64,000 nt of DNA from Perkinsela sp. CCAP 1560/9 (GCA_965644495.1 CBFFSA010000018.1:124001-188000); one strand, 5' to 3'; numbered from the stretch's first letter, positions 1 to 57,801 are shown. Notes: generated by a model not told the origin, from the sequence alone. Program-made: numbers and translations.

Positions 1-3000
1 CCGGAGTAGGACATGACCCCGAGCACGGGGTTCAGACACACACTGCTGTGGTCCATTACCCCGTGGGTCTCGAAGGCGGAGGTACGCACGAGGCTGCGGT
101 GGGTGGAGGCCATGTGGTAGTACTTGGTGTCGGTGCGGTACGATGTGGTCGCGAGTGCGGGTCCAATGGATTGTTTCGTAATCCCACATTGGAACAGGTT
201 ACGCGGGGAACAGTTGTGTTCAAAGAACGGGATGACGCTCGCGGTGAGACTAAGGAGGTGGGTGGAGGGACGGGGCTCGGTGTAGTCGTGGGTGTGGGCC
301 TCCGTGCGGGCGTCGTGGAGATCGGCATAGACGGAGGCGATGTTTAGATAGGTCTGTTCCCATACCCCGATGTGAAGCTTGTCTCCGGTGGGGAGGTGTT
401 GGATGGGTCGCATCAAACGCCCCGGTGTGGTGAAGAGGTACAGAACGGAAAAAGTGGCGGAGAGGGAGACGGCGACCACCTCAATGTGACACAGCGGAGA
501 ACCACGGCGTCGTTTCTCTCCGCGTAGGATCTCACAACACGAAGTCACAGAGGGGGTGGATACGAACCCCAAGAGCGCGCCGTCCAACATGACGGTTGTC
601 ATCCCCTCGTAGCGCTGCCACACAGGTGTGAGCTCAGTTGGGTACAAATGCTCTCTCAGTAACTGCTGGACGGCATCCCCTACATCGTATTCCACCGGTT
701 TCCCATTGGACGTACTGTCCGATAAACTCACGCGGGCGCCAAGCGTGAGATGGTTCTGCACCCCACAGGCCTCCCCATCCGGGGTGTGGACCACACAGTA
801 GAATCCCCAAGACTCGGTACGGCACCGTCGGACCTCTGTGCTTCGCATTTCGAGGATATGCCGACCGCGGTGTACCCCACGAAGGAGTTCCGCGACACGA
901 TAGAAATTTAACCGCTCACAGCTCACCGAGAGACCCATGACTTGGGGCACAGGGGTGGGGAGGGAGCGGTCGGGGGTGTAGGACCCAGTGGTGAAGATCC
1001 GGGACAGTGGTTTCAGAACCCCACGTAGCGGGGTGCGCAGTATGGTGGACAGCTCCGGGAGCAGCACTGTTTTACGGTCCCGCCCACGAAGATGGGTGAG
1101 ATGGGGGGAGGAGCACACCGCGGCGACGTTTCGCGCCCCACTGGCGAGTCCACGTAACACACAGCTCTCTAACACCCCACTGAGGAGGTTGCCCAATGTA
1201 AACACCTCCTGGTGACTCGGGAGGTCGAGGTTGTCCTTGGGGAGGGTGTCGTCCACGAAGGCGTAGAGCTGGCGTAGGAGGTGGACGAGGAGCTCAAATT
1301 TTCGCTCGCGTTCAGCGCATGCACGTGCCAGGACGTCCTCGTTGGGGTCTGGAAGAAGCTCGCGCTCAAACGAATCCTCGGAGTTCAAATGGGGGAACAG
1401 ATAGCGGTGCAGCACGTAGCGTCCGTACCACACATCCGGGTGTTGTGGAGGCGCATGGGCCCCAGAGGGCTCACACTCCGGCAGCAGTGTTGTCGCGCCC
1501 AGCGGATTACCAAACTTTCGACGGTGCTGAGTCTGAGCCTCGCGGATGAGTCTGCCGAGCAGCATTGTGTGCGGAAGAGCCCCTAGGACTTGGCCGTAGG
1601 TCTGGGCGAGATGGTGCCGTAGCAGTGCCTCCACACGGCCCACCGTGATTTCGGATGTAATTCCCGCGGAGAGGATGTGGAACACCCCCGCATGAGTCAC
1701 TTCTCGTAGAGCACACAGCAACAACAAAAATGGGACGTATTGTACTTTTCGACCCAGGGGAAGAGAGACAACCACCTCGGCACTGCGCAGGTAGTGGATA
1801 AAAGTAGGAAGAACGCGGCCGGAGCGTGTCTTGGAGCGGAACTGGATCGCTTTCTCGGAGAAGTTGTCGCCGTGTTTGCACAGCCCGGGGCGTTGGGTAA
1901 GTAGAGGGGTGTTGCTACGCGGGACACTGAGCAGTCGGAGTATTTTTTCTGAACCGTTGATGACAAAATACCCCCCAGCGAGCATCGGCTCGTGCTGGGC
2001 CTCGCGCCACGGGATACCCAACGCCTTCATGTGGGTGAGAACACAGTGGGCACTCCCGACCATAGTCGGCACTTCTCCTGCCTTCATCCAGAAAAAGGCG
2101 CTAGGGGGAATCAGTTCAGTAGGATAGCGGTGACCTTGGGAATCTACCACACGCTCTGAGTGCTCCACAGTGGCGGAAGTAAAAAACCTCTCGGAATCGT
2201 TCGCTGCGTCAATCCCCAAGTCAACCGAGATCGCATGGGGTACACTCGATAAAGGGGAGTCCCGTCGTAGCTGAAAGCGAAACGCAATTCTCCAGTACAG
2301 AGGCTCCTGGTAGGAAGTGCCAAGCCGGACATGACGTGCGGGAGCGAGATAGCCAGCGGCTACACGCAGCAGACTCCCATAAAGCGTCTCCGATGTGCGA
2401 ACTAGCTGACCCCAGTCTGTGTGTCGTCGCGTAACCAGGTGTTCGTATACTGTTGCGGGGTCACGTGTGTGTTTGGGGATTTCGTACCGTCCATACGTAT
2501 CCGCATCCCACGCATAAAGATGCTGTGCGTCAAACCAAATCTTATTTGATTTCGCCTCGAAGGCCGTCGTTAGGTCCGACCACTGCTGATGGAGATCTGC
2601 CACGTTTTGTAAAGTCGTTGTGACGTGCAGCAGGTTTTGTCGTACCTCATCGCATTTTTCAACCGAGACATGTGTCCCGACGTGTGTGGTGTATCGCTCC
2701 TGGAGCGCACGGAGGTGATCCTGCTCCTTCTCTAAAGACGAAAACACGGTACGAAACTTTTCTGTCATTGATTGAACGTAGCACGCGGAGGTCTCCAGGG
2801 AGGGGTGACATATGCCGACAGCTACACGGTTGCACTGAACGCTAATCGTGGAGCCGTCCTTGCCAAGGGGTTGGGTAGCCATGACGCCTTGTTGGGTGTG
2901 CTCGGTAATCAGTCGGGGGAGGTCATGACGTAAGGCATCGTCCCACATGGAGGTGTGTAGACTACAGAGCTCGGAGACACTCTTGTCCACATCTCCAAGA

Positions 3001-3425
3001 ATACCATTGAGTGATGAGTCGACAGGGGACGAGGTCGCGCCCGAAGACGCGTATTGAGGTTGCAGGAGGAGTAGGTTTTGCAACGAACCCTGTATTTGAA
3101 GCAGGAGATTGTACTTGTGAGAAATTGGGAGTGTGTGGGGGTCCGGGTCTCGTTGAAGGCTATGTATCTGATCCAGTAATTCTCGTGCAATAGGAGGCAC
3201 TTCCTTTTTCCTTGGCGAAATGTACTTCACAGCCCTTTTGCGATCCGGCAATTCCCCTCTGGGCAGTGATAAACGGGTCCGGAGACTTATCACAAAGTCA
3301 TCCAATTTGGGTGTTTTTTCCAACTCCAGTATTTGATCAAAAGATTCAATTTGCTCACGAAGAGTGAGATCAATCCATTGCCAAGCTCTGTCCTCCTGAG
3401 AACTTGTGTCACATGCTGAGCTCAT
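1..3425 (-). CDS. RPA2: RNA polymerase I second-largest subunit (3' end runs off the window), with long N-terminal extension
   Basis: Not in the ORF track. Manual translation from ATG 3425 is stop-free to base 1 (~1141 codons). It contains GEVPTMVGSAHC, AGGYFVINGSEKILRLLSVPRSN, DNLDLPSHQEV, ERLNFYR..HRG, ESWGFYCVVHTPDGEACG, PFFEHNCSPRNLFQC and VMSYSG, which match Pol I-type Rpa135 blocks. Confidence 0.93.
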   Translation of the reverse strand, partial: MSSACDTSSQEDRAWQWIDLTLREQIESFDQILELEKTPKLDDFVISLRTRLSLPRGELPDRKRAVKYISPRKKEVPPIARELLDQIHSLQRDPDPHTLPISHKYNLLLQIQGSLQNLLLLQPQYASSGATSSPVDSSLNGILGDVDKSVSELCSLHTSMWDDALRHDLPRLITEHTQQGVMATQPLGKDGSTISVQCNRVAVGICHPSLETSACYVQSMTEKFRTVFSSLEKEQDHLRALQERYTTHVGTHVSVEKCDEVRQNLLHVTTTLQNVADLHQQWSDLTTAFEAKSNKIWFDAQHLYAWDADTYGRYEIPKHTRDPATVYEHLVTRRHTDWGQLVRTSETLYGSLLRVAAGYLAPARHVRLGTSYQEPLYWRIAFRFQLRRDSPLSSVPHAISVDLGIDAANDSERFFTSATVEHSERVVDSQGHRYPTELIPPSAFFWMKAGEVPTMVGSAHCVLTHMKALGIPWREAQHEPMLAGGYFVINGSEKILRLLSVPRSNTPLLTQRPGLCKHGDNFSEKAIQFRSKTRSGRVLPTFIHYLRSAEVVVSLPLGRKVQYVPFLLLLCALREVTHAGVFHILSAGITSEITVGRVEALLRHHLAQTYGQVLGALPHTMLLGRLIREAQTQHRRKFGNPLGATTLLPECEPSGAHAPPQHPDVWYGRYVLHRYLFPHLNSEDSFERELLPDPNEDVLARACAERERKFELLVHLLRQLYAFVDDTLPKDNLDLPSHQEVFTLGNLLSGVLESCVLRGLASGARNVAAVCSSPHLTHLRGRDRKTVLLPELSTILRTPLRGVLKPLSRIFTTGSYTPDRSLPTPVPQVMGLSVSCERLNFYRVAELLRGVHRGRHILEMRSTEVRRCRTESWGFYCVVHTPDGEACGVQNHLTLGARVSLSDSTSNGKPVEYDVGDAVQQLLREHLYPTELTPVWQRYEGMTTVMLDGALLGFVSTPSVTSCCEILRGEKRRRGSPLCHIEVVAVSLSATFSVLYLFTTPGRLMRPIQHLPTGDKLHIGVWEQTYLNIASVYADLHDARTEAHTHDYTEPRPSTHLLSLTASVIPFFEHNCSPRNLFQCGITKQSIGPALATTSYRTDTKYYHMASTHRSLVRTSAFETHGVMDHSSVCLNPVLGVMSYS

Positions 3426-3879
3426 AGGATATTGTATTCTGTTTGATGTATTTGATATGCAGAAAAAAAGAAAACTAGAGAACAAAAAATAATTTAGAAG
3501 ATGTAAGGTAATATTTTGTGAGCTATAATTCAACGAAAATTTATATTTTTCGTTAAAATTGGATGGGTAATCTGCCTGTTTAAGAAAACTTAGGCTTGAA
3601 GAATAATACGCGTAACTTAGGCGACCTAAGGGAGATCTGGAGCCCCGCAACCGACTACAGCACTAAATTTTGACTTCAAATACGTTCTTGCAACGTTGGT
3701 CTGTTTTGGTATGCATATACGAAAGGGGAGAAGTGATCTTTATCTACGTAGAAAAAAGGTGTCGGAAGAAAGTGGTATCGGGAGAAAATGCGTCCCACGT
3801 TTCGAGCTGTGATGTCGTCCCGAACACCAAATCGTGTTTCAAATATCGATTCCGGAGACCATCCATTCTTCTTAAGAAG

Positions 3880-5247
3880 CTACTTTTCCGGCGGCGTGTT
3901 TGCCTTCCCGTTCGATTCCACTTCAGGGGGATAATATACCAGATGGACCCCAAGCGGGGTCTCCACGACATCTGACAACGACCCTGGGGAAAGCGCCCAC
4001 AGAACATCCCTTAGAATATTGAGCGAGGGACCATACTCCCTTTTCGCCTCCAAGGGAGGCATTTTCCCGCCCTGTGTTTTCCCACTCGAACATTCGGAGT
4101 ACTGGGAGGCATAATCCGCATAGTGCTCTTTATCCTGAATCAAACTGTACCGTATGGTTTGTAGACGCCAGTGTGCCTCAAAAGGGGACCGGGTAACGGG
4201 CTGCGCTCCCCAAGTGGGGCGCAGACTTTTGGTGTGCTTGAGAAGAATGTGGTATCCCACTCGTGTAGGTCCGGTAATCATGGACTCGGGCGCCAACAAC
4301 ACAGTACACGAGCTTTCTGGCTGTGAAACCTCCAACAAAGGGCTTGCAGCAACAGGGGCCGTGTTCGACTCCTCCTTCACCTCAAAAACAGAACCCGGTA
4401 CCCCACCCAAATCCACACCTCCCTCTTTTCCCACCTCCACCTTCCCTCCCTCCCCACTCCCCACCCCCGCCTCCCCCATCTCCCTTATAAACCCCTCCAC
4501 CTCCCTCCTCACCCCCCTCCCCCCACCCCCCCCTCCCCCCCTCCGCAGCCGGTACACCCGGCTACTCCCGCCGGTGCGCACCCACTGCCCCTCCGGCCAC
4601 AGCACCGGGACCGCGGGCGCCACCCGCACCCCGTTCACGAAGGTGCCGTGGGTGGAGCGCAGGTCCACGAGGTAGACCCCCCCGGCGCGGTGGTGGACGA
4701 GCGCGAGGTGGACCCGGGAGCAGCTGGGGTGGAGCAGCGGGATGTCGCACACCGCGGGGTGGGTCCCGAGCAGGTAGGTGCGGTGGGCGTGGAGCGACAC
4801 GGTGGCGACGCGCTGGGGGGCGGGGGCGCGGGAGCCGGAGCGGAAGACCTCGAGGGAGGGCGCGGCGGGGGAGGGGGGGGCGGGGGGGAGGGCCGCCCAG
4901 GGGGGCGGGGTGAAGTACGGCGACTGCAGGGCGTGCTTGCGAGAGGGGGGGAGGGGGGAGGGGGAGGGGGTAGACGGGGGAGGGGAGGGGGAGCGTTGGG
5001 GAGGAGGGGGTGGTGGGGTTGGGGATGAGGGGGGTAGGGTGGGAGAAAGGGGGGGGGTTGGGGTGAGAGTGGGTTGTGATGGGGGAGGGTTCTGGGTTTT
5101 TGTTTTTGTGGCTTTATTGTGTTGTGGTGGGGGAGGGGTAGGGTGGAGGGGACGTGAGGTGAGAGGTCGGGAGGGACGTAGTTGGGTGTAGAAAGGGGTT
5201 TGACGGAGAGTGGCCCAGTCGGGTTCATTGGGACCAGAGGCAGACAT
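3880..5247 (-). CDS. FHA domain + parvulin PPIase protein (Par45-like) with Pro-rich N-terminus
   Basis: FHA motifs (YLLG..CDIPLLHPSCSRVHLAL, LVDLRSTHGTFVNG) are followed by a parvulin domain (HILLKH..RP..VTRS, ASQYSECSS..GG, LSDVVETPLGVHLV). This is the architecture of trypanosomatid Par45. Confidence 0.85.
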   Translation of the reverse strand: MSASGPNEPDWATLRQTPFYTQLRPSRPLTSRPLHPTPPPPQHNKATKTKTQNPPPSQPTLTPTPPLSPTLPPSSPTPPPPPPQRSPSPPPSTPSPSPLPPSRKHALQSPYFTPPPWAALPPAPPSPAAPSLEVFRSGSRAPAPQRVATVSLHAHRTYLLGTHPAVCDIPLLHPSCSRVHLALVHHRAGGVYLVDLRSTHGTFVNGVRVAPAVPVLWPEGQWVRTGGSSRVYRLRRGGGGGGGRGVRREVEGFIREMGEAGVGSGEGGKVEVGKEGGVDLGGVPGSVFEVKEESNTAPVAASPLLEVSQPESSCTVLLAPESMITGPTRVGYHILLKHTKSLRPTWGAQPVTRSPFEAHWRLQTIRYSLIQDKEHYADYASQYSECSSGKTQGGKMPPLEAKREYGPSLNILRDVLWALSPGSLSDVVETPLGVHLVYYPPEVESNGKANTPPEK

Positions 5248-12708: not shown

Positions 12709-12987
12709 TCGGAAGCGTATGCCTACCCAATTAAAGTTTACATATTTTTTTCTTAATATTCGTTTTAACCTGTAGTCATTGCGGTGGTTGTATAACTACC
12801 GCTCTACCCTCGATTTTTGAAAAAAAAGTGAAAAAAAACAGTGAAAATATAAAGAGGAACACATTAATATAATAGAAGAAAAAAATATAAAAGGGGGCTT
12901 CGGTGGTCCAAAATTGAAAAAGAAAATTGAAAAAAATGGGGGGTCCATGGGGGGCGTCCAGGGGGGGGTCATGGTCGAGCAAATTTT

Positions 12988-15900
12988 CAGAGGTCCCTAA
13001 AACTATTTATAGATAGTTTATAGTGTTTCAAGAAAACTTATAGTACTATAAACCTCGTTTATAGTACTATAAACACTATACATGTATAGTACTATAAAAA
13101 CTATATGGTGTTTATCAGTGTTTCATGTCCAGAAAGGCGCGCGGTAGACAGATCGGTCGATGGGCCTGGAGGAATTTCGCGGGGCAGGAGAGAGCCGATG
13201 GAGGTGTAGAGGCTTAGAGGGGTCACGTGATGTTAGGTGGAGCAAGTGGTATGGATACGCTGACGCGTAGAAAAAAGTGAAAAGAGTAGTAGTTTTTGTC
13301 AGAAATGGAAAAAGACGGGATCCTATAGCTCACAACAAGTTCTTCCCATAATGCTCTTTCCTTGTAGCGTGCAAAACGCATTACAGTTATCCTTCAACGA
13401 GTTCCCGTTACATCACTCGTTGGATCCTAGACGTGGCGGATTCAACGGCAAGATAAAACACAAAAACACACCGCAGAGCCTGCAAGATTCAATATCTGCA
13501 AAATTCATAATATTTTAAAGAAATTTGAAGAATCACTTACCCGCTATTTCACATTTACACATTATACTTCGGCAGGAAAGGCGACCTAAGAAGACAAGGC
13601 GTCTGGGCTGGAACACATCTGAAATTAAAGTACGTCGACTTCCCCATCGACTTCAACGAAGTGTGAAAAAACGATTTGAGCTTGACCACGACGCTTGTTG
13701 GGCATAATGATGAGAAAAATAGTGAGAAATCTTTCAAGAAAACGGGAGTGACAAAAAGAAATTGCGTCGAGTCGGCATTTCAAGCAATAATTTCAGAAAA
13801 AATTTACTAAGAAAAATATTAAAAAAATATAGTTTTTATATATAGTGTTTTAAAGTTTATAGTACTATAATAGTACTATAAAATAATTTTTGTGGCACTT
13901 CCGCCGGCAGAAGAGGTTACAGTTCAAGTGTATTGATTTATGTATTGAGTTCGGTGGGGTGTAGCAAAAATCCATTATTTCATAGATGGAAGGTCATGAA
14001 AGTGAAGGATGAAGATAGGTGGAAGGTCAGGAAAATGTGGTTCACCGACGGGAATGGGTGAAAGCATAAAAGCGCGAGAGGAGTGTTCTGGGGGGAAAGG
14101 TGGAGAAGAAATCTCAACTGGTATGCTCTTTAGCCGAGAAGTGCAACATAAAGTTGGAATTGCAACAGAAAGGTGAACGACAACGACGTGCTACTAATAA
14201 TTTTTGAAGACATTCATGATTTTTGCGATTGCACTTAAAGGAAGGACATGTTATATTAAGTTTTTTAGTAAGTGCCAACTTTACTGAGTAGTGACTAACT
14301 TTACGTTTTTTATGCATAAAACTGAAAATGGGGTATACGTCAAAGAGAGGAAATTCAACCCTTTGACTTAACGTCAAAAACCGAAAAAGAGGGAAAACTC
14401 AGGGGGGGGGGGAGATCAGTCAGGGAGGAGGTGTAGCGTTGATGAAGGTGCAGAGTCGTGCGTATTTTTTAACCTATGAAGACAAAATTAGGAACCTAAT
14501 CTTTAATTTATCCTTTACGTATTCCTTTAACTACTGTTTTTACGAAATGTTTCTTAAAAAGCGAATTCTCCTTTGCCTCAACGGATTACAGAGGAACATT
14601 TTCCGCATTCTCAAAGCCGTCTACTTCTATTCGCGAATCTCTATTCGGACATTTACGTCCTCTCTTTTTTCTAGCATCCTCTTTTGCGCGAAGCTCGCCC
14701 ATTATCTCATCATGCGACTTCACGTCCTCCGCGCATTCCTTGTAGCAAAGTCTGTTCTGATACGCAACCAGTAACTGATTAAAATCTCGAGGAAATCTAT
14801 ACTGGTCCTCATTTTCTTTGACCACGGAGCTGAATCTTGATAAAACTTTCGGCCAAGGTATGTGCCTCGAAGATTTGTCGCGCACTTCATCGATGACACA
14901 TTGCAGGAGCAAGCGCACTTCAAGGGGATTGAATTTCACGATCACGTTTCTTTGGCGAGGATCAATTCTTGGAGCATGTAAATGTGTTGCCAGGTGACAT
15001 GCGTTGCTATTTCCTGTCGCGGTAAAATGTTGTACAGGTAAGTCATCAACCATTATGATCTCCTCGTGCGCCCCCAAACCTACATCAAAATCTGTATCAA
15101 AAGTTTTAAATATTCCTGCACCAGGGATATCAAGTACGCAAACACCGCATATTCTGTGCCTCTGCGGAGTTGGTGATACGGAATCGAAAGGAACCACTAG
15201 ATATGGTACGTGTGAAAGCTCGTGCAAAACGAGTACAGTGCTTGAAATGACATTGGCAAGAGAGCGAACTAGGGGAAGAAATAATTGCCCGTGTGAAACC
15301 TTGGTTATAACTTCCTCGACGTCGTTCTCGGGCTTGCTCAAGTGTTCAAGAACTCGTTCGAACGTCGTATCTTTGTCCACCCGCGATGTATCGCACCGCA
15401 GAATACAGGGATCTCCCGCACACAAGTATTCAAGTGTGCTCATCATTGACGCTGCAGTGCACTCTCCACCTAGGAAACGCACCTTTTCCTCGTGCTTAGT
15501 TGGTGTAGCCGAAAGTGCGAAGTTAAATTCCACATCGTCTTTGCCAAGAAATACGGGCTCGCAACCAAACTTATTTTGCGCCCAGCTGCGAACATTACTC
15601 AGCTGATTGTCAGACAAGGAATGTGGGATAAGTGCATATCCATCCCCAGATTGAACAGGGTGAACATATTGTGTGAAGAACAGTTCATGAGTCGTTAGTT
15701 GTTTCGCCACAGGGAGAAGTGCAAAAGGACTATTACATAATCTTGCATCGTCCGCCCCCAGGAAGAGAGAAGAGAAGGTTTCTTTCAAGGTTCGAAACAA
15801 CAGAGCGTCGAAACACATCATATCCGGCGCTGATTTGAATCTCACAGCACATTTCACATTACTTCGATAAATAAAGCTCCTTGTCAGCGCGTCTACAGTT

Positions 15901-17981
15901 TCTGCTGAGCTACGCGCGCGAAGCTTCACTTTAGCTTTCAAACGAGAATGAAAACTTTCACAAATGTTGGTTCCTCGGCTGGAACGATACACCATATTCT
16001 TATCCACGCGCGTCAAATTCACATCTGTAGGGCCACTGAGGCAGTCCCGCTCGATGTGGGCTATTGCGTACGGCCAGAGAGAAGCTAACTTGGGGTTCCA
16101 TGTAAAGATGTCCGAATATTTTTCCTTCAGGAGTTCCATTTTAGAAAGCAATTTTGCCGGACGTGGAATAACTTTCTCATGCGCATCAAGATGTTCCTTT
16201 TTTGACAAAGCGATAGTAAGAGGCTCTACTACAGATCGGCAAAGCTCGGTGTAAAACATTTTCTGCCGATTTGATGCTGAAGTGCGTGGGATAACAGCTG
16301 CGAAACGGTGCAGCCAATGCCATAAATCGCATTTAATATGTGCAGATGGAAAGTGGCGTTGTATTTTAGAACGTACTGTGCAACAGTTGTCAGCATATAT
16401 AACCATTGCTTTGCTTCCTGGACGTGATGCTATGTTTGAAAGAACATTGTGCAAAGTGTCAAAACTTTCATTTCGAGTGTATACGGCAGCCAAAATCTCA
16501 CCAATTTCATTGTGAACAACAAAGTGAGAACGAAACGGTGCTTCCCCACGCAGTCGAATGCACTTTGCGGTCTCGAAAGTATGATCCATTGCAAGCACTG
16601 TACCAGTCAGCTCGGACATATAGTTGTCACACTCCACCTGGCGCTGCTGGAGTAATGAAATCAAAACATCCTGAAAATGATCCACTGATGGAGTCATCCA
16701 TTCTTGTGAAATTCGATTTGAAATCGCTTCCACGCAATTAGGATCCCAGCGAAATCCAAATTTTTCCGTGTGCTTTAATTCAAAAATGTGTCTTTCATCG
16801 CGCTTATTACTCAGATACTGCAACGTCCGCTGATGGTAATCGACGGCATACACTTCTTGCAGAATACCTTGAAATTCACTCATATTAGAACCACTAGTTC
16901 CTATTGCCATAATGGCCGTTGAAAGTCGTCTAGTCATCCCCAATTTCTCAGTTTTAATAATAGGAAAGGAATTTCGTGCCTTGTGGGATAGGCTGGAAAT
17001 TAAGCTCTTTTCATCACTTGATATTACCTTACGACACTCAGTGCTACGACATTGATACACTTCACAAAAATAGTACATTGGTGTCGAAAGATCAAAAATC
17101 CGACGCACAGGAGAAAGCTTCATGAAAGTCAATCGCTCTTTGCAATGAAGACAGTGTAGGTTTTCTTTTTCGCCTTGGCGCATGGGCGCCCATATGATCC
17201 ATGGCAAGGTAAAAAACGTTTCCAATGAACTCCTAGGCTCCGGAGAAAAGAACCAAAGGGAAGTACATGTAGTTTTTGTTTTTAATTCTTCGTACGCCCT
17301 TCGAATGCCGTGACTTGATGTGAAGACATTCCTGTTTCGAGCAAATGCGTCCAATATTTTGTCACTTCTGTTCGTTCGTGTGTGGTTTCTTCTGGGCGAG
17401 AAGCGAACCGACAAAGCTCCGAATTTTCGGCTACTACACGCGAAAGGGTGGTTGAAAGTTCGTTGTTCCTTTTTTCCATTTCCTCAATTTGTGTTTCTAG
17501 CTTTTTGATGCTTCCCGTAAGTTGCTTCTTTTCCTTGGCCATTGTTTGGATGACGTTCAGTAGGTCCGTTTCACAAGACATGACTTAAATAATCAGAAAT
17601 CTAGAAATGATTTTTAGAGTACCAGGAAGGTTCAATAGTTTTGCTTGTAAAGTGATCATCTTGAACAGTCAGGGTACAATAGCTGAGGCTTTAAACTCTC
17701 AAACATGTACTAGAAATCGCTTCTGGGAAAACGATTTTGACGAAATCAAAAAAAATTATTGGACTACAAAAAAATTAGGTATGAAGTTCAGACTCAATAG
17801 TACACAAGTTTCATAGGAACTATTAAGTTCAGACTCAATAATAGAAACACACTTCAGTCACTATTGAGTTTTAGCAATCCAGATACGTGCAACTCAATAG
17901 AGAACTCACTAGTGACTCTTCAACCCAATAGTTGCTGTCACTATGGCGGAACTAACATTTTTGTAGTTTTACGGACCTCTG
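12988..17981 (-). mobile_element. 5-kb DNA transposon with 18-bp TIRs and an 8-bp TSD; superfamily unassigned
   Basis: CAGAGGTCCCTAAAACTA / TAGTTTTACGGACCTCTG (17/18 match); flanks CAAATTTT / CAATTTTT (7/8). The empty site is visible in other family A copies. Subterminal TATAGTACTATA repeats. Confidence 0.9.
14586..17581 (-). CDS. Large DDE transposase with DxxH motif, Cys-rich N-terminal domain and Myb/SANT-like C-terminus; the N-terminal coiled-coil ORF (17282-17581) is in a different frame
   Basis: AMDHTF..VVHNEIGEI..IYADNCC..KCDLWHWLHRF..SRGTNICESFHSRL; CLHC..YQCRSTEC; KFNPLEVRLLL..IPWPKV..RDFNQL. The 942-aa frame has only a TTG start and overlaps the ATG-initiated 99-aa ORF. Confidence 0.8.
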
Positions 17982-18951
17982 CAATTTTTTTTGAAAAAAA
18001 TATTTTTCGAAAAAAACTCTCGGAAGGGGTAGCCGGGGTCTTGGCGCGCATTTTCCACCCCCCTACCTGGGGGTGACCCCCCCGCGTATCCGCAGGACGG
18101 GTTCGCCAGGTTCGGATTTTTTCGGATTCTTTTTTTGAAAAAAAATTCAACTTGGCAAAAAAAATATTTTTCCAAAATCGTTTCCCCTATTGTATTGTGA
18201 GAGTTTGGGACCTATACTAGCTTTCTACGCAGTTGTTTTCGCAAGGTATCCCTTCTTCGAGACTTGGTGCGCCCCTCAAAATGACTCATTTTTGACTAAA
18301 AAAGGTGAAAAAGTATTTTTCGGCCCCAAAGGGCCTTTTTTGTGTCTAAAGAATGGTGTGATTGGAGTCGTATTCCCCACGCAATACGTTCGGCAGGCTT
18401 TCATTCATGCCTACGAGTGATTTCCCACGCGCAAATGTCGGATTTAGTGCTCTGAGAGCAAAAATACCCAAAATTGACCCCATTTTTTCCCGAAAATCGG
18501 CTATTTTTGGCTACAACCTTTCCGTTTTCTTCAGCTTTCCAGACCAAATTTTATTTTTTAGGCTCTTCGTTAAACGCGGTGGTAGTTTTCAACGCGAAGC
18601 GCGCAGCATGAGTGACTTCTAAGTTGAAAACAACCACTGCGTTTAACGAAGAGCCTAGAAAAGATTATGTAATATTACAATAGGCAGAAAATTGTGTTCC
18701 TTTACACAAGTAGGCGTTCGAAAACGTAAAACCTTATAAAATTACCGTCGATCCCCCCAATTGTAATAGACCTCCCAGTAACAAGGATTTGACCTTTTTT
18801 GGGATGCCACCAGTAACATCGGGCAGTAAAAAGGAAAAATCGGGCGTCTCCTGCTCAAGCCCTTATCAAGAAGGACAATTAATTAGGGGGGAGGGGGCTA
18901 TGACAATTAAGTGGGGGTGCAGTGTTTTGTGCTCGTCGGAAAAATAGAAAA

Positions 18952-26678: not shown

Positions 26679-28523
26679 TAGAAGAAAAAAATATAAAAGG
26701 GGGCTCCGGTGGTCCAAAATTGAAAAACAAAATTGAAAAAAATGGGGGGACCATGGGGGGTTCCATGGAGGGGTCCAGGAGGGGGGCATGGTCGAGCAAA
26801 TTTTTTTGAAAAAAATATTTTCCGAAAAAAACTCTCAGAAGGGGTAGCCGGGGTCTTGGCGCGTATTTTCCACCCCACCGTATTTTCCACCCTACCTGGG
26901 GGTGACCCCCCCTCGTATGCGCAGGACGGGTCCGCCAAGTTCGGATTTTTTCGGAATTTGTTTTTGAAAAAAAATTCAACTTGGCGAAAAAAATGGCAAA
27001 AAAAATATTTTTTCAAAATCCTTTGCCCTATTGTATTTTGATAGTTTGGGACGTATACTAGGTTTCCGCACCGTTGTTTTCGCAAGATATCCCTTCTTGG
27101 AGCCGTGGTAGGCCTCCCAAAATGACCCATTTTTGACTAAAAAAGGGTGAAAAAGTATTTTTCGGACCCCAAGGGGCCTTTTTGTGTCGAAAGAACGGTG
27201 TGGTTGGAGTCGCATTCTCTACCCAATACTTTGGGTAGGCGTTGCTTCATCCCTACGCGTCATTTCCCACACGCAAATATCAAATTTGGGACCTAAACTA
27301 CCTTTCTACGACGTTGTTTTCGCAAAGTATTCATTCTTCGAGCCGTGGCATGCTCCCCAAAATGACCAATTTTTGACTAAAAAACGTGAAAAAGTATTTT
27401 TCGGACCCAAAGGGCCCTTTTTGTGTCGAAAGAATGGTGTGGTTGAAGTCGTATTCTCTACCCAATACGTTCGGCAGGCTTTCATTCATGCCTACGAGTG
27501 ATTTCCCACGCGCAAATGTCGGATTTCGTGCTCTGAGAGCAAAAATACCCAAAAATGACCCCATTTTTTTCCCGAAAATCGGCTATTTTTGGCTATAATC
27601 TTTCCGTTTTCTTCAGCTTTCCAGACCAAATTTTATTTTTTAGGCTCTTCGTTAAACGCGGTGGTAGTTTTCAACGCGAAGCGCGCAGCATGAGTGACTT
27701 CTAAGTTGAAAACAACCACCGCGTTTAACGAAGAGCCTAAAAAAGAAAATACGGGGAATTCACTGCATACCGTCACCCCCCCCTCACTTGTCCTCCTAGG
27801 TGACATATCCTCTTTTTACGATTGATGAGAGGATATGTCACCTAGTACGAAGACCCCACGTAGATCATAACTCTATGGAGCATTTTTCGTTTGTTTTCCT
27901 TACTATTTATCGCGTTTTTTCACTTCTATGATTTTTACTGGTGATATTTTTAACCTCTACTGGTAATTTTTGCTGGTAAACACTTTTTTATTCAAACAAC
28001 TTACCATACCTGTGACCTCGTATATACCATACCGGGCGGGGGGGTATGCCAAACCGGACCCCCGTTTAACTCTTTCTTTAGTATAGCAGGCCGAGAGTAA
28101 CTAATAGAAAAAATATTCACACTCGAAGTCGGTACTAGGTGACTTGTCCTCCTAGGTGACATATCCGCTTTTGGCCGTTTTGTTCCACTTTTGCAAGGAT
28201 ATGTGAGGGGCCGGGAGGGTGACGGTACATGTAGTAATACTACAATACTACAATACTACATTATGGAGCGTGACCATTGTTCAGTTGCTGCAGGACTCCG
28301 CATGTGGCTAGCAGTTCAAAGTCAGGCTAAGCCATCCCACCGACTCATTTTATATGACCGCTTGATTCGTGCTTTGCGGGTAGAGCACGTGATTATAGGA
28401 ATACTATCTCCGCTGATAGAGTGGTTGTCAATGCACATTCGAAATATCCGAAACCTACGGGAGATTTGTCTCCCCCTTTTGTGCTAATTGTCAGGCGACG
28501 TAAGCGGCAACTCCTAATACAAA

Positions 28524-28997
28524 GTGATCGATGAGGTGAATAAATGGTGTTGTGGTGACCATCAAAACGATGAAGTAGAAACTATCCGTCTATATAACGA
28601 CAAAAGCCCTTTTCAATCATTTTGGTCGGATCTTGTGACCCGACATACGTTTCCCCTTCTGTCACACGTTGCTCGAAAATTGTCGGTCGCAGTTACTTCT
28701 GAAGCAGCCTGTGAGCGCATATTTAGCTCAGTAGGCTTTGTGCACTCTGATCTTCGCTCAAGACTGAAGCCTGAACTTGTTGAGGCTGAAACTGCCATTC
28801 GATGTCGTGTAAAGCAACCTGTAGACGTCACAAATTGTGATGTGAGCAATTCTTCTACTATTTCTGAAGAACAGCCAGCTTCTATTGACAATTGCCGCTT
28901 TGAAGACTTTATCAGTCACGATATGCTATCTACGAACGAGTTGCTTCTTGTAGAGTCACTCTTTGACGCTGGAGACCTCTGCGGAAATTCAAAATGA
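28524..28997 (+). pseudogene. hAT transposase remnant (C-terminal dimerisation domain)
   Basis: FW...FPLLSHVARKLSVAVTSEAACERIFSSVGFVHSDLRSRLKPELVE; the upstream part is missing or decayed. Confidence 0.85.
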
Positions 28998-56089: not shown

Positions 56090-57801
56090 CTCCCCCTCTC
56101 ATTAATAAATTTCTAGGCTCTTCGTTAAACGCGGTGGTTGTTTTCAACTTAGAAGTCACTCATGCTGCGCGCTTCGCGTTGAAAACTACCTCCGCGCTCA
56201 ATGAAGAGCTTAAAAAAGAAAATTTAAAAAAGCGCTAAATAGTGAAAAAAATGTATGAACAAAAAAATTCGAATCACAAAAATAAGAACATGCGATTTTC
56301 ATCTCATTTTAGAGGATCATTTTTTAGAGGATCTTAGAGGTCACTCATGCTGCGCGCTTCGCGTTCAAAACTAGCACCGCGTTTAACGAAGAGCCTAAAA
56401 AAGAAAATTCAGCCTGGACAGCTAAAGTAAGACAAAGATTATAGCCAAAAATACCCGATTTTATGGTAAAAATGGGGTATTTTTTGGGTATTTTTGCTCT
56501 CAGAGCGCTAAATCTGATATTTGCGCGTGAGAAATCACTCGTAGGCGTGAATGAAAGCCTACTGAACGTATTGGGTATAGAATGCGACTCCAACCACACC
56601 ATTCTTGACATAAAAAGACCTCTTTAGGTCCGAAAATTACTTTTCCGCACTTTTTGGTCAAAAATGGGCCATTTTGGGAGGCGTGCCACGGCTAGAAGAT
56701 GGGGTATCTGGCGAAAACAACGGTGTAGATGGCTAGTATAGGTCCCAAACTCTCAAAATACAATAGCGAAAAAAATAATTTTTTAACCATTTTTTCCGCC
56801 AAGTTGAATTTTTTTTCAATTTTTTTTTCCCGAAAATATCCGAACTTGGCGGACCCGTCCTGCGGATACGCGGGGGGGTCACCCCCAGGTAGGGGGGTGG
56901 AAAATGCGCGCCAAGACCCCGGCTACCCCTTCTGCGGTTTTTTTTCGAAAAATATTTTTTTCTAAAAAATTTGCTCGACCATCTTTTTTTCCATTTCTGA
57001 CAAAAACTACTACTCTTTTCACTTTTTTTTACGCGTCAGCGTATCCATACCACTTGCTCCACCTAACATCACGTGACCCCTCTAAGCCTCTACACCTCCA
57101 TCGGTTCTGTCCTGCCCCGCGAAATTCCTCCAGGCCCATCGACCGATCTGTCTACCGCGCGCCTTTCTGGACATGAAACACTGATAAACACCATATAGTT
57201 TTTATAGTACTATATAGTGTTTATAGTACTATAAACGAGGTTTATAGTACTATAAATTTTCTTGAAACACTATAAACTATCTATAAATAGTTTTAGGGAC
57301 CTCTGAAAATTTGCTCGACCATGACCCCCCCACTGGACCCACCATTTTTTTCAATTTTTTCAATTTTGGACCACCGGAGACCCCTTTTATATTTTTTTTT
57401 CTATTATATTACTGTGTTCCTCTTTATATTTTCACTGTTTTTGTTCACTTTTTTTTCAATAATCGAGGGTAGGGCGGTAGTTTTACAACAACCGTAATAA
57501 TTATAGTCTATAAACCTTTTTAGTTAATAATTGTAATTATAGTTTATAATTATTAATGAGATTCGATAAGTGATTTTTTCTTATTGTGGACTTCAAATTC
57601 TTGATTTTCGAGACACTTCGTTCAACTTGGAAGCAATTTTTAGTGCAAAGTATGTGGTACAGGTGTCTTTGTAGATAAAAAATGAAGAATTTGAGGCTTG
57701 TAATTATAAAAGTGAGACTCATAATTATAATCGCATTAAATTTCTATAAACGATCCCTTTAATGATTTTTGGAGGTTTATAATTATTAATGAGAGGGGGA
57801 G
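56090..57801. mobile_element. Second copy of the 323-bp MITE, split by family A
   Basis: TA|CTCCCCCTCTCATTAATAA (56090-56108) resumes at ~57499 and ends GAGAGGGGGAG|TA. Confidence 0.85.
56114..57498 (-). mobile_element. Family A copy (reverse) with a duplicated hairpin end and a 323-bp left-end fragment of the 5-kb transposon (56983-57305)
   Basis: Hairpins at 56114-56212 and 56340-56397 (partial). The body is colinear with 44162-45107, and 56983-57305 is the reverse complement of 12988-13315. Confidence 0.87.

Follow-up and report, generated by a model that had tools for sequence, protein, structure and literature searches.

Dada, a superfamily of DNA transposons, was described by Kojima and Jurka in 2013 (PMC3706591), and a further survey was published by Kojima in 2022 (PMC8869645). 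In the first description, the transposase combined a DDE triad and a DxxH motif with two fingers, CCCC at the N-terminus and CCHC at the C-terminus (the latter reported in all families); in the families from Laccaria and Ectocarpus, a DEDDy exonuclease was located between the second Asp and the DxxH motif (PMC3706591). Dada elements lacked terminal inverted repeats and contained short sub-terminal ones equidistant from the ends; their target-site duplications were 6-7 bp long, readings of 8 bp being conceded as ambiguous; the Perkinsus families were intron-less; and MuDR, hAT, P, Kolobok and IS256 were named as distantly similar (PMC3706591). All of the 2013 elements with defined ends were located in U6, U1 or tRNA genes, and ends could be defined only for families within RNA genes (PMC3706591). 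Many Dada families, but not all, insert into multicopy small-RNA genes. According to the later survey, target choice was relaxed in some Dada families, and one copy resided within a non-autonomous hAT element (PMC8869645). Here, we analyzed a 64,000-nucleotide stretch of DNA from Perkinsela sp. CCAP 1560/9 (GCA_965644495.1 CBFFSA010000018.1:124001-188000; hereafter the window, with positions counted from its first letter). The original prediction had regarded positions 12988-17981 as a near-complete single 5-kb transposon with an unclassified transposase. Our results make it very likely that this region consists of two nested DNA transposons, i.e., a Dada-type element, designated B, inside a hAT-type non-autonomous element, designated M.

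A search of the whole 21-Mb assembly revealed that the 4994 bp of the region split at position 906/907 into two repeat families. Positions 1-906 matched more than 15 short genomic copies (88-93% identity), whereas positions 907-4970 matched a different set of copies (98-99% identity) that contained none of the first 906 bp. Positions 1-906 together with the last ~24 bp formed a separate short repeat, which is M, and positions 907-4969/4970 corresponded to B, with ends and duplications of its own. Within the window, the left 906 bp of M (12988-13893, plus strand) comprised an 18-bp repeat (12988-13005) and sub-terminal palindromes of TTATAGTACTATAAAC, and were followed by B (13894-17956, minus strand), which was 4063 bp long (4064 bp with the A at 17957), and then by the right 18-bp repeat of M (17964-17981, minus strand). 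The insertion point of B was the inner edge of this right repeat, whose first base was overlapped by the B duplication, and uninterrupted M copies continued across the same point as ...GTTTTTGTAGTTTTACGG....

The boundaries of B were constant across unrelated flanks (GGCACTTCCGCC ... GGCGGAACTAAC(A)). Full-length copies on two other sequences of the assembly (C1 and C11), as well as left and right ends of B on a third (C4), contained no M sequence and had differing flanks. Four independent insertion sites each showed 7 duplicated bases plus an A that could be assigned to either side: (A)TTTTTGT in the window (left copy at 13886-13893, right copy at 17957-17964), (A)GTTTTTC on C1, (A)GTGTGAC on C11 and (A)CACACAC on C4. 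The sequences hit were a hAT-type miniature inverted-repeat transposable element, a dispersed repeat, a region of low copy number and the border of an older copy of B. For three of the B insertions, empty sites were also observed; a paralogue of the C11 flank on C9 (93% identity) had neither B nor more than one copy of the C11 duplication, and the same was true of three copies of the dispersed repeat targeted on C1. With constant boundaries, duplications of its own and empty sites, B is thus an independent mobile element nested in M. Comparison of the flanks by eye showed no consistent target motif near the insertions of the kind reported for Dada-U6 and Dada-U1, no tRNA genes were detected at the six B loci searched and no Rfam families at the five loci searched, and no excision footprints of B were seen.

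The two ends of B, GGCACTTCCGCC at the gene-3' end (13894-13905, plus strand) and the motif at the gene-5' end (17945-17956, minus strand; reverse complement GTTAGTTCCGCC), were identical at 9 of 12 bases, and, in the 8-bp register, TTCCGCC and GGCGGAA were set back from each end by 5 nt. Further sub-terminal repeats of the ACTCAATAG type were present in both orientations at 17780-17940, with a partner at 13931-13951. Similar ends were found in distant relatives (GTCGGTTCCGCC, GGCTCTTCCGGC and GGCTGTTCCGCC) whose proteins were only ~33% identical to that of B. For one of them, five metagenome contigs diverged precisely at the element boundaries; the second had the same motif at its gene-3' end, where the element boundary was not delimited. 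The five ends of the three elements could be aligned without gaps as G-NNNN-TTCCG(C/G)C, in which G1 and TTCCG (positions 6-10) were invariant. Judging from these alignments, the duplication of B is probably 8 bp long, because the gap-free register requires B to end at 17956 and because the base outside the end of the metagenomic relative varies (T, G, T). Only 7 bp are unambiguous, since target and element could each supply the A; no duplications of the metagenomic relative were readable, as its contigs pair different flanks.

The gene of B was intron-less and encoded a single transposase. An intact frame of 997 amino acids starting with ATG (L003:2196-5189) was present in two identical copies on C11, which belonged to a 12-kb duplicated pair. 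In the window, the gene consisted of two overlapping frames on the minus strand, a main frame of 942 amino acids (14586-17414) with the Cys4 cluster and the catalytic residues, and an N-terminal, coiled-coil-like frame of 99 amino acids with an ATG start (17282-17581). The two were severed by the loss of one base after 17305, as judged from two other copies, and a 12-bp deletion was also found at 17857; the C1 copy had a different 1-bp deletion. The three full copies compared differed from each other by 28-50 substitutions over 4 kb. On C1, B was part of a five-unit tandem array with a period of 6485 bp (G000:C1:2641604-2671630; L002, L005-L008), in which B was full-length in the last unit and truncated at its position 1047, with ~3.4 kb of flanking sequence, in the other four. 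All units had the same right flank, which indicated segmental tandem duplication and not transposition. On C4 (G000:C4:983700-989600; L009/L011), a young, internally interrupted B was located next to the right end of an older fragment with 85-96% identity to B, the two being separated by only five bases (CACAC). This arrangement of adjacent copies is reminiscent of tandem insertions described for Dada-U1.

The outer element M owns the CAG..CTG ends that had been attributed to the coding region. The 18-bp inverted repeats were indeed present, being identical at 17 of 18 positions, and the flanking 8-mers, CAAATTTT (12980-12987) and CAATTTTT (17982-17989), were identical at seven of eight. M was inserted in a dispersed repeat, and another copy of this repeat (26790-26815, plus strand) contained an empty site with a single CAAATTTT (exact match, 0 expected by chance), in line with the predicted 8-bp target-site duplication. 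Genome-wide, M was a ~0.93-kb element that ended in CAGAGGTCC[C/G]TAAAACTA, generated an 8-bp duplication and encoded no protein. Perfect 8-bp duplications flanked all five complete short copies (L012, L013, L015, L017 and L018), and the 18-bp repeat was present 31 times in the genome. The CAGAG ends of M fit the YARNG rule of the hAT superfamily, with which M also shares the 8-bp duplication, although M itself is non-coding. Sixteen matches to the hAT dimerisation domain were detected in the genome. On C5, a hAT element (L039:101-3443; G000:C5:322900-326242) had perfect 18-bp repeats (CAGGGGTCCCTAAAACTT), a duplication identical at seven of eight positions and a 630-amino-acid open frame in which Dimer_Tnp_hAT scored above the cut-off. 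Its repeat was identical to that of M at 16 of 18 positions, and the sub-terminal motif TTATAGTACTATAAAC was common to both. Because its ends and sub-terminal motif match those of an element encoding the hAT dimerisation domain, M is, on sequence grounds, a hAT-type non-autonomous element, and the C5 element is likely related to the source from which the M family is supplied with transposase. A DUF6729-protein-coding autonomous partner of M was ruled out, all nine genomic DUF6729 matches being B copies.

Some other features of the M and hAT families were also observed. One M copy (L022; G000:C15:157380-161219) was 3.8 kb long because it contained a nested Tc1-type element, in which a transposase frame of 324 amino acids was present, and other transposons seem to insert frequently into M copies. 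In the window, a truncated M copy (its first ~326 bp, minus strand; 56986-57305) adjoined an intact copy of the family-A site (56955-56980), and the hAT dimerisation domain was matched at 28608-28799, with 37 bits, within a 159-amino-acid frame, which indicated that a hAT remnant was present as well.

A single autonomous 5-kb element with CAG..CTG ends, from which the ~0.93-kb copies arose by internal deletion, would be compatible with the repeats and the 7/8 duplication that do flank the coding region in the window, and the composition of the short copies (positions 1-906 plus the last ~24 bp) is a pattern that internal deletion could produce. However, no other coding copy had these ends, an outcome that refutes the single element on the original prediction's own terms, the coding copies had junctions of their own at 907 and 4969/70, and the empty sites fit B alone. 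In addition, the short copies were 88-93% identical versus 98-99% for the B copies, the end motif of B was kept in distant relatives, and the CAG..CTG ends and sub-terminal motif matched a hAT element with the hAT dimerisation domain. We therefore consider a single element very improbable. The protein type is not tied to CAG..CTG termini and an 8-bp duplication by the window copy, as had been claimed, because these ends belong to the hAT-type M; of the predicted protein of ~1000 amino acids with such ends, the protein was confirmed and the ends were not its own. That the B-type genes belong to the host or are domesticated, and owe their spread to segmental duplication and not to mobility, is extremely improbable. 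Some copies were indeed duplicated (the C1 array and the C11 pair), and the B gene lay on the same strand as all large neighbouring frames; yet at least four insertions in unrelated flanks had precise common boundaries and 7/8-bp duplications, empty sites existed, the end motifs were conserved, some copies were frameshifted, and not all copies had extended flanking homology.

We also examined the transposase of B, a mobile element nested in M. The resemblance to DUF6729 that had been suggested in the original prediction was real (Pfam, E = 6e-17, above the cut-off, for the window frame and 1e-14 for the intact copy), and the coiled-coil-like N-terminal segment, the Cys4 cluster and the DHTF, DNCC, DLWH and RGTNICES motifs were all present in the window protein. 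In the numbering of the intact 997-amino-acid copy, the Cys4 residues were C144, C147, C178 and C183; C144 and C147 were invariant and C178 was conserved in at least 90% of the sequences in a 44-sequence domain alignment, and C183 was invariant when B was compared with its three closest relatives. The catalytic residues and their neighbours were D333 (DHTF), D398 (DNCC), D419xxH422, H509-x4-CLSDP and E542 (RGTNICES); a core alignment of 40 sequences showed D398, H422, H509 and E542 to be invariant and D333 and D419 to be conserved in at least 90% of the sequences. From the N- to the C-terminus, the protein comprised the coiled-coil-like segment, Cys4, an RNase-H-like DDE core with a DxxH-bearing helical insertion, and a region of ~350 amino acids that was found only in B and its three closest relatives. 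The predicted C-terminal Myb/SANT-like module received no support from Pfam.

An AlphaFold model of residues 280-680 (predicted local distance difference test score, pLDDT, 86) had an RNase-H-like fold, and this predicted core resembled transposases and integrases. Its best match in PDB was the IS256-family ISCth4 transposase (PDB 6XGX; Foldseek E = 1e-6, Z = 13.8 over 243 residues), followed by Hermes (Z = 10.4) and the P element transposase (Z = 9.8), and a sequence-profile search of PDB with the core alignment gave nothing meaningful. For the modelled DUF6729 domain (pLDDT 85), no significant fold match was found in PDB, and the fold search returned weak zinc-ribbon look-alikes, the top one being a large serine integrase (E = 0.14). 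Pfam MULE matched B below its threshold (E = 0.01-0.02, 15.6-16.8 bits versus a cut-off of 27.6), as did ISL3. As expected from the original prediction, Pfam detected no hAT dimerisation domain (PF05699, no match at E<=10) and no BED finger in the protein. No KDZ or CxC domain matched at E<=10 either, and KDZ was absent from the 47 relatives scanned. The B protein is a DDE transposase of the (C/D)xxH group, as had been proposed, and is distinct from those of hAT, P, Mutator and Kolobok.

A word-index protein search identified three relatives of B, and an exhaustive search identified 462 (E<=1e-3), of which three were full-length (~35% identity). In the other relatives, conservation was limited to residues ~100-650. 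Among the 47 relatives scanned, 33 contained DUF6729 and 10 contained a DNA_pol_A_exo1 3'-5' exonuclease, which lay within a ~400-amino-acid insertion directly after the second Asp in all four mapped carriers; the named carriers belonged to Agaricales and Mucoromycota. One relative of B came from the prokinetoplastid Apiculatamorpha, and one relative matched Pfam MULE (E = 3.5e-5). Two of the three close relatives (P0002 and P0005; L021, L044) had an extra C-terminal extension of ~300 amino acids that was missing in B; it contained a conserved ...ASNDCG...LQNL... stretch and matched no Pfam family at E<=0.001.

Although the transposase had been regarded as unclassified, possibly representing a poorly described superfamily, B appears to fit the named Dada superfamily as a divergent, non-targeted lineage, judging from its motifs, its architecture and DUF6729. 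The Dada alignments in Dataset S1 of the 2013 description contain DHTFK, VDNCC, LD-x2-H, HIESDCLSDP...RGTNYTE and CP-x-C...Y-x-C (PMC3706591), and these strings, as read there, match B and its family consensus. The strings DHTF, VDNCC, H-x3-[GD]CLSDP and RGT-x3-E are common to Dada and B, and the CP-x-C ... Y-x-C pattern of B is the same as that of Dada-1_LB and Dada-2_LB. A Cys4 finger at the N-terminus, a DDE triad and, following its second Asp, DxxH are also common to both, and the triad spacing is D-65-D-144-E in B versus D-68-D-176-E in Dada-U6_DR. The exonuclease after the second Asp in relatives of B is located as in the Dada elements of Laccaria and Ectocarpus. Like Dada, B has short sub-terminal inverted repeats and no long terminal ones; the one-base ambiguity of its duplication resembles the one- or two-base ambiguity reported for Dada; its gene is intron-less, like those of the Perkinsus families; and its position in the non-autonomous hAT element M parallels the published case of a Dada copy in such an element (PMC8869645). 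The fold matches of the B core to IS256, hAT and P transposases also agree with the stated distant kinship of Dada to MuDR, hAT, P, Kolobok and IS256.

Several observations weigh against this assignment. It rests on motifs read in Dataset S1, architecture and DUF6729 rather than on a computed score. B had no C-terminal CCHC finger, the sole Cys/His cluster there being unconserved in the three closest relatives, and no CCHC exon was found within 690 bp downstream of the stop codon. We regard this finger as a common accessory feature and not the basis of the superfamily, but its absence is still a real departure. The duplication of B, if 8 bp, differs from the 6-7 bp reported for Dada, and B was located outside U6, U1, 5S and tRNA genes, unlike the 2013 Dada elements with defined ends. 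Its N-terminal coiled-coil-like segment and ~350-amino-acid C-terminal region (shared with three relatives, ~35% identity) also distinguish it from Dada. Moreover, the current activity of B (expression and mobility) is putative. Because of the weak sub-threshold MULE and ISL3 matches, B might be nearer to Mutator; we consider it unlikely that B would be better classed as a divergent Mutator-like (MULE- or IS256-like) element or as a separate unnamed superfamily. The MULE match of one relative, the top structural match to ISCth4, the lack of the CCHC finger and of small-RNA-gene targeting, and a duplication of possibly 8 bp would all fit such a classification, and B resembles IS256/Mutator and ISCth4 in its C/DxxH motif and in an RNase-H fold into which a helical domain is inserted. 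On the other hand, the MULE matches of B lay below the Pfam cut-off, there was no significant sequence match to IS256/Mutator and the N-terminal domain, DUF6729 in B, differs. Mutator elements typically have long terminal repeats and 9-10-bp duplications, and B has neither. The motif strings, Cys4 and exonuclease-after-D2 architecture are common to the B type and published Dada, which was itself described as distantly similar to MuDR and IS256 (PMC3706591). With hAT, the B protein shares a resemblance to Hermes at the fold level only. Zisupton/KDZ elements share a large Cys-rich transposase and probably the 8-bp duplication with B, whose motifs match Dada instead. Membership of the B protein in Zisupton/KDZ, hAT or MULE was rejected, with Pfam matches either none or sub-threshold.

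Within the Dada assignment, we tentatively raise the possibility, which we hold with some doubt, that a separate, non-targeted branch on the margin of the superfamily is made up of B and a few relatives and is characterised by a conserved end motif, a duplication of truly 8 bp, the lack of a CCHC finger, and a coiled coil and C-terminal region specific to the clade. Such a lineage may be nearer to an ancestral unspecialised state that preceded the Dada elements targeting small-RNA genes, and DUF6729 might then serve the entire superfamily as its end-binding zinc domain. A literature search on DUF6729 found no papers, and its link to Dada as an end-binding zinc domain was stated in no paper of the literature searched.

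Based on these features, the B transposase would recognise the inverted G-NNNN-TTCCGCC motif at both ends together with the sub-terminal repeats. The Cys4 domain (DUF6729) and the coiled coil may bind and pair the ends, and the DDE site would carry out cleavage and joining, the cuts in the target being offset by 7 or 8 bp, with apparently no preference for small-RNA genes. The chemistry could follow either the cut-and-paste route of hAT, P and Mutator or the copy-out route of IS256. The frameshifted B of the window could presumably move only with transposase supplied in trans from the intact C11 copies.

All nine frames of at least 350 amino acids in the window were on the minus strand, which fits the one-way gene clusters of the kinetoplastid type. 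One of the frames in the window (3880-5247, minus strand) encoded a fusion of an FHA domain and a parvulin-type peptidyl-prolyl isomerase, which we take to be a trypanosomatid feature. Together with the relative of B from Apiculatamorpha, these observations are compatible with a kinetoplastid-like host, which would be one more difference from the published Dada elements.

If the outer repeats had been taken as the ends of the coding element, hAT-type termini would have been given to a Dada-type transposase. The corrected locus instead ties such a transposase to defined termini and a 7/8-bp duplication, and provides a Dada-type element with exact ends outside small-RNA genes, empty-site support and an end motif kept across ~33%-identical relatives, with an intact 997-amino-acid gene in the same genome. 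The superfamily has been known since 2013, and the B lineage extends Dada without adding a new kind. DUF6729 also gains a working meaning as the N-terminal Cys4 domain of Dada-type transposases, which should aid the annotation of the many DUF6729-containing eukaryotic proteins that are still unnamed.

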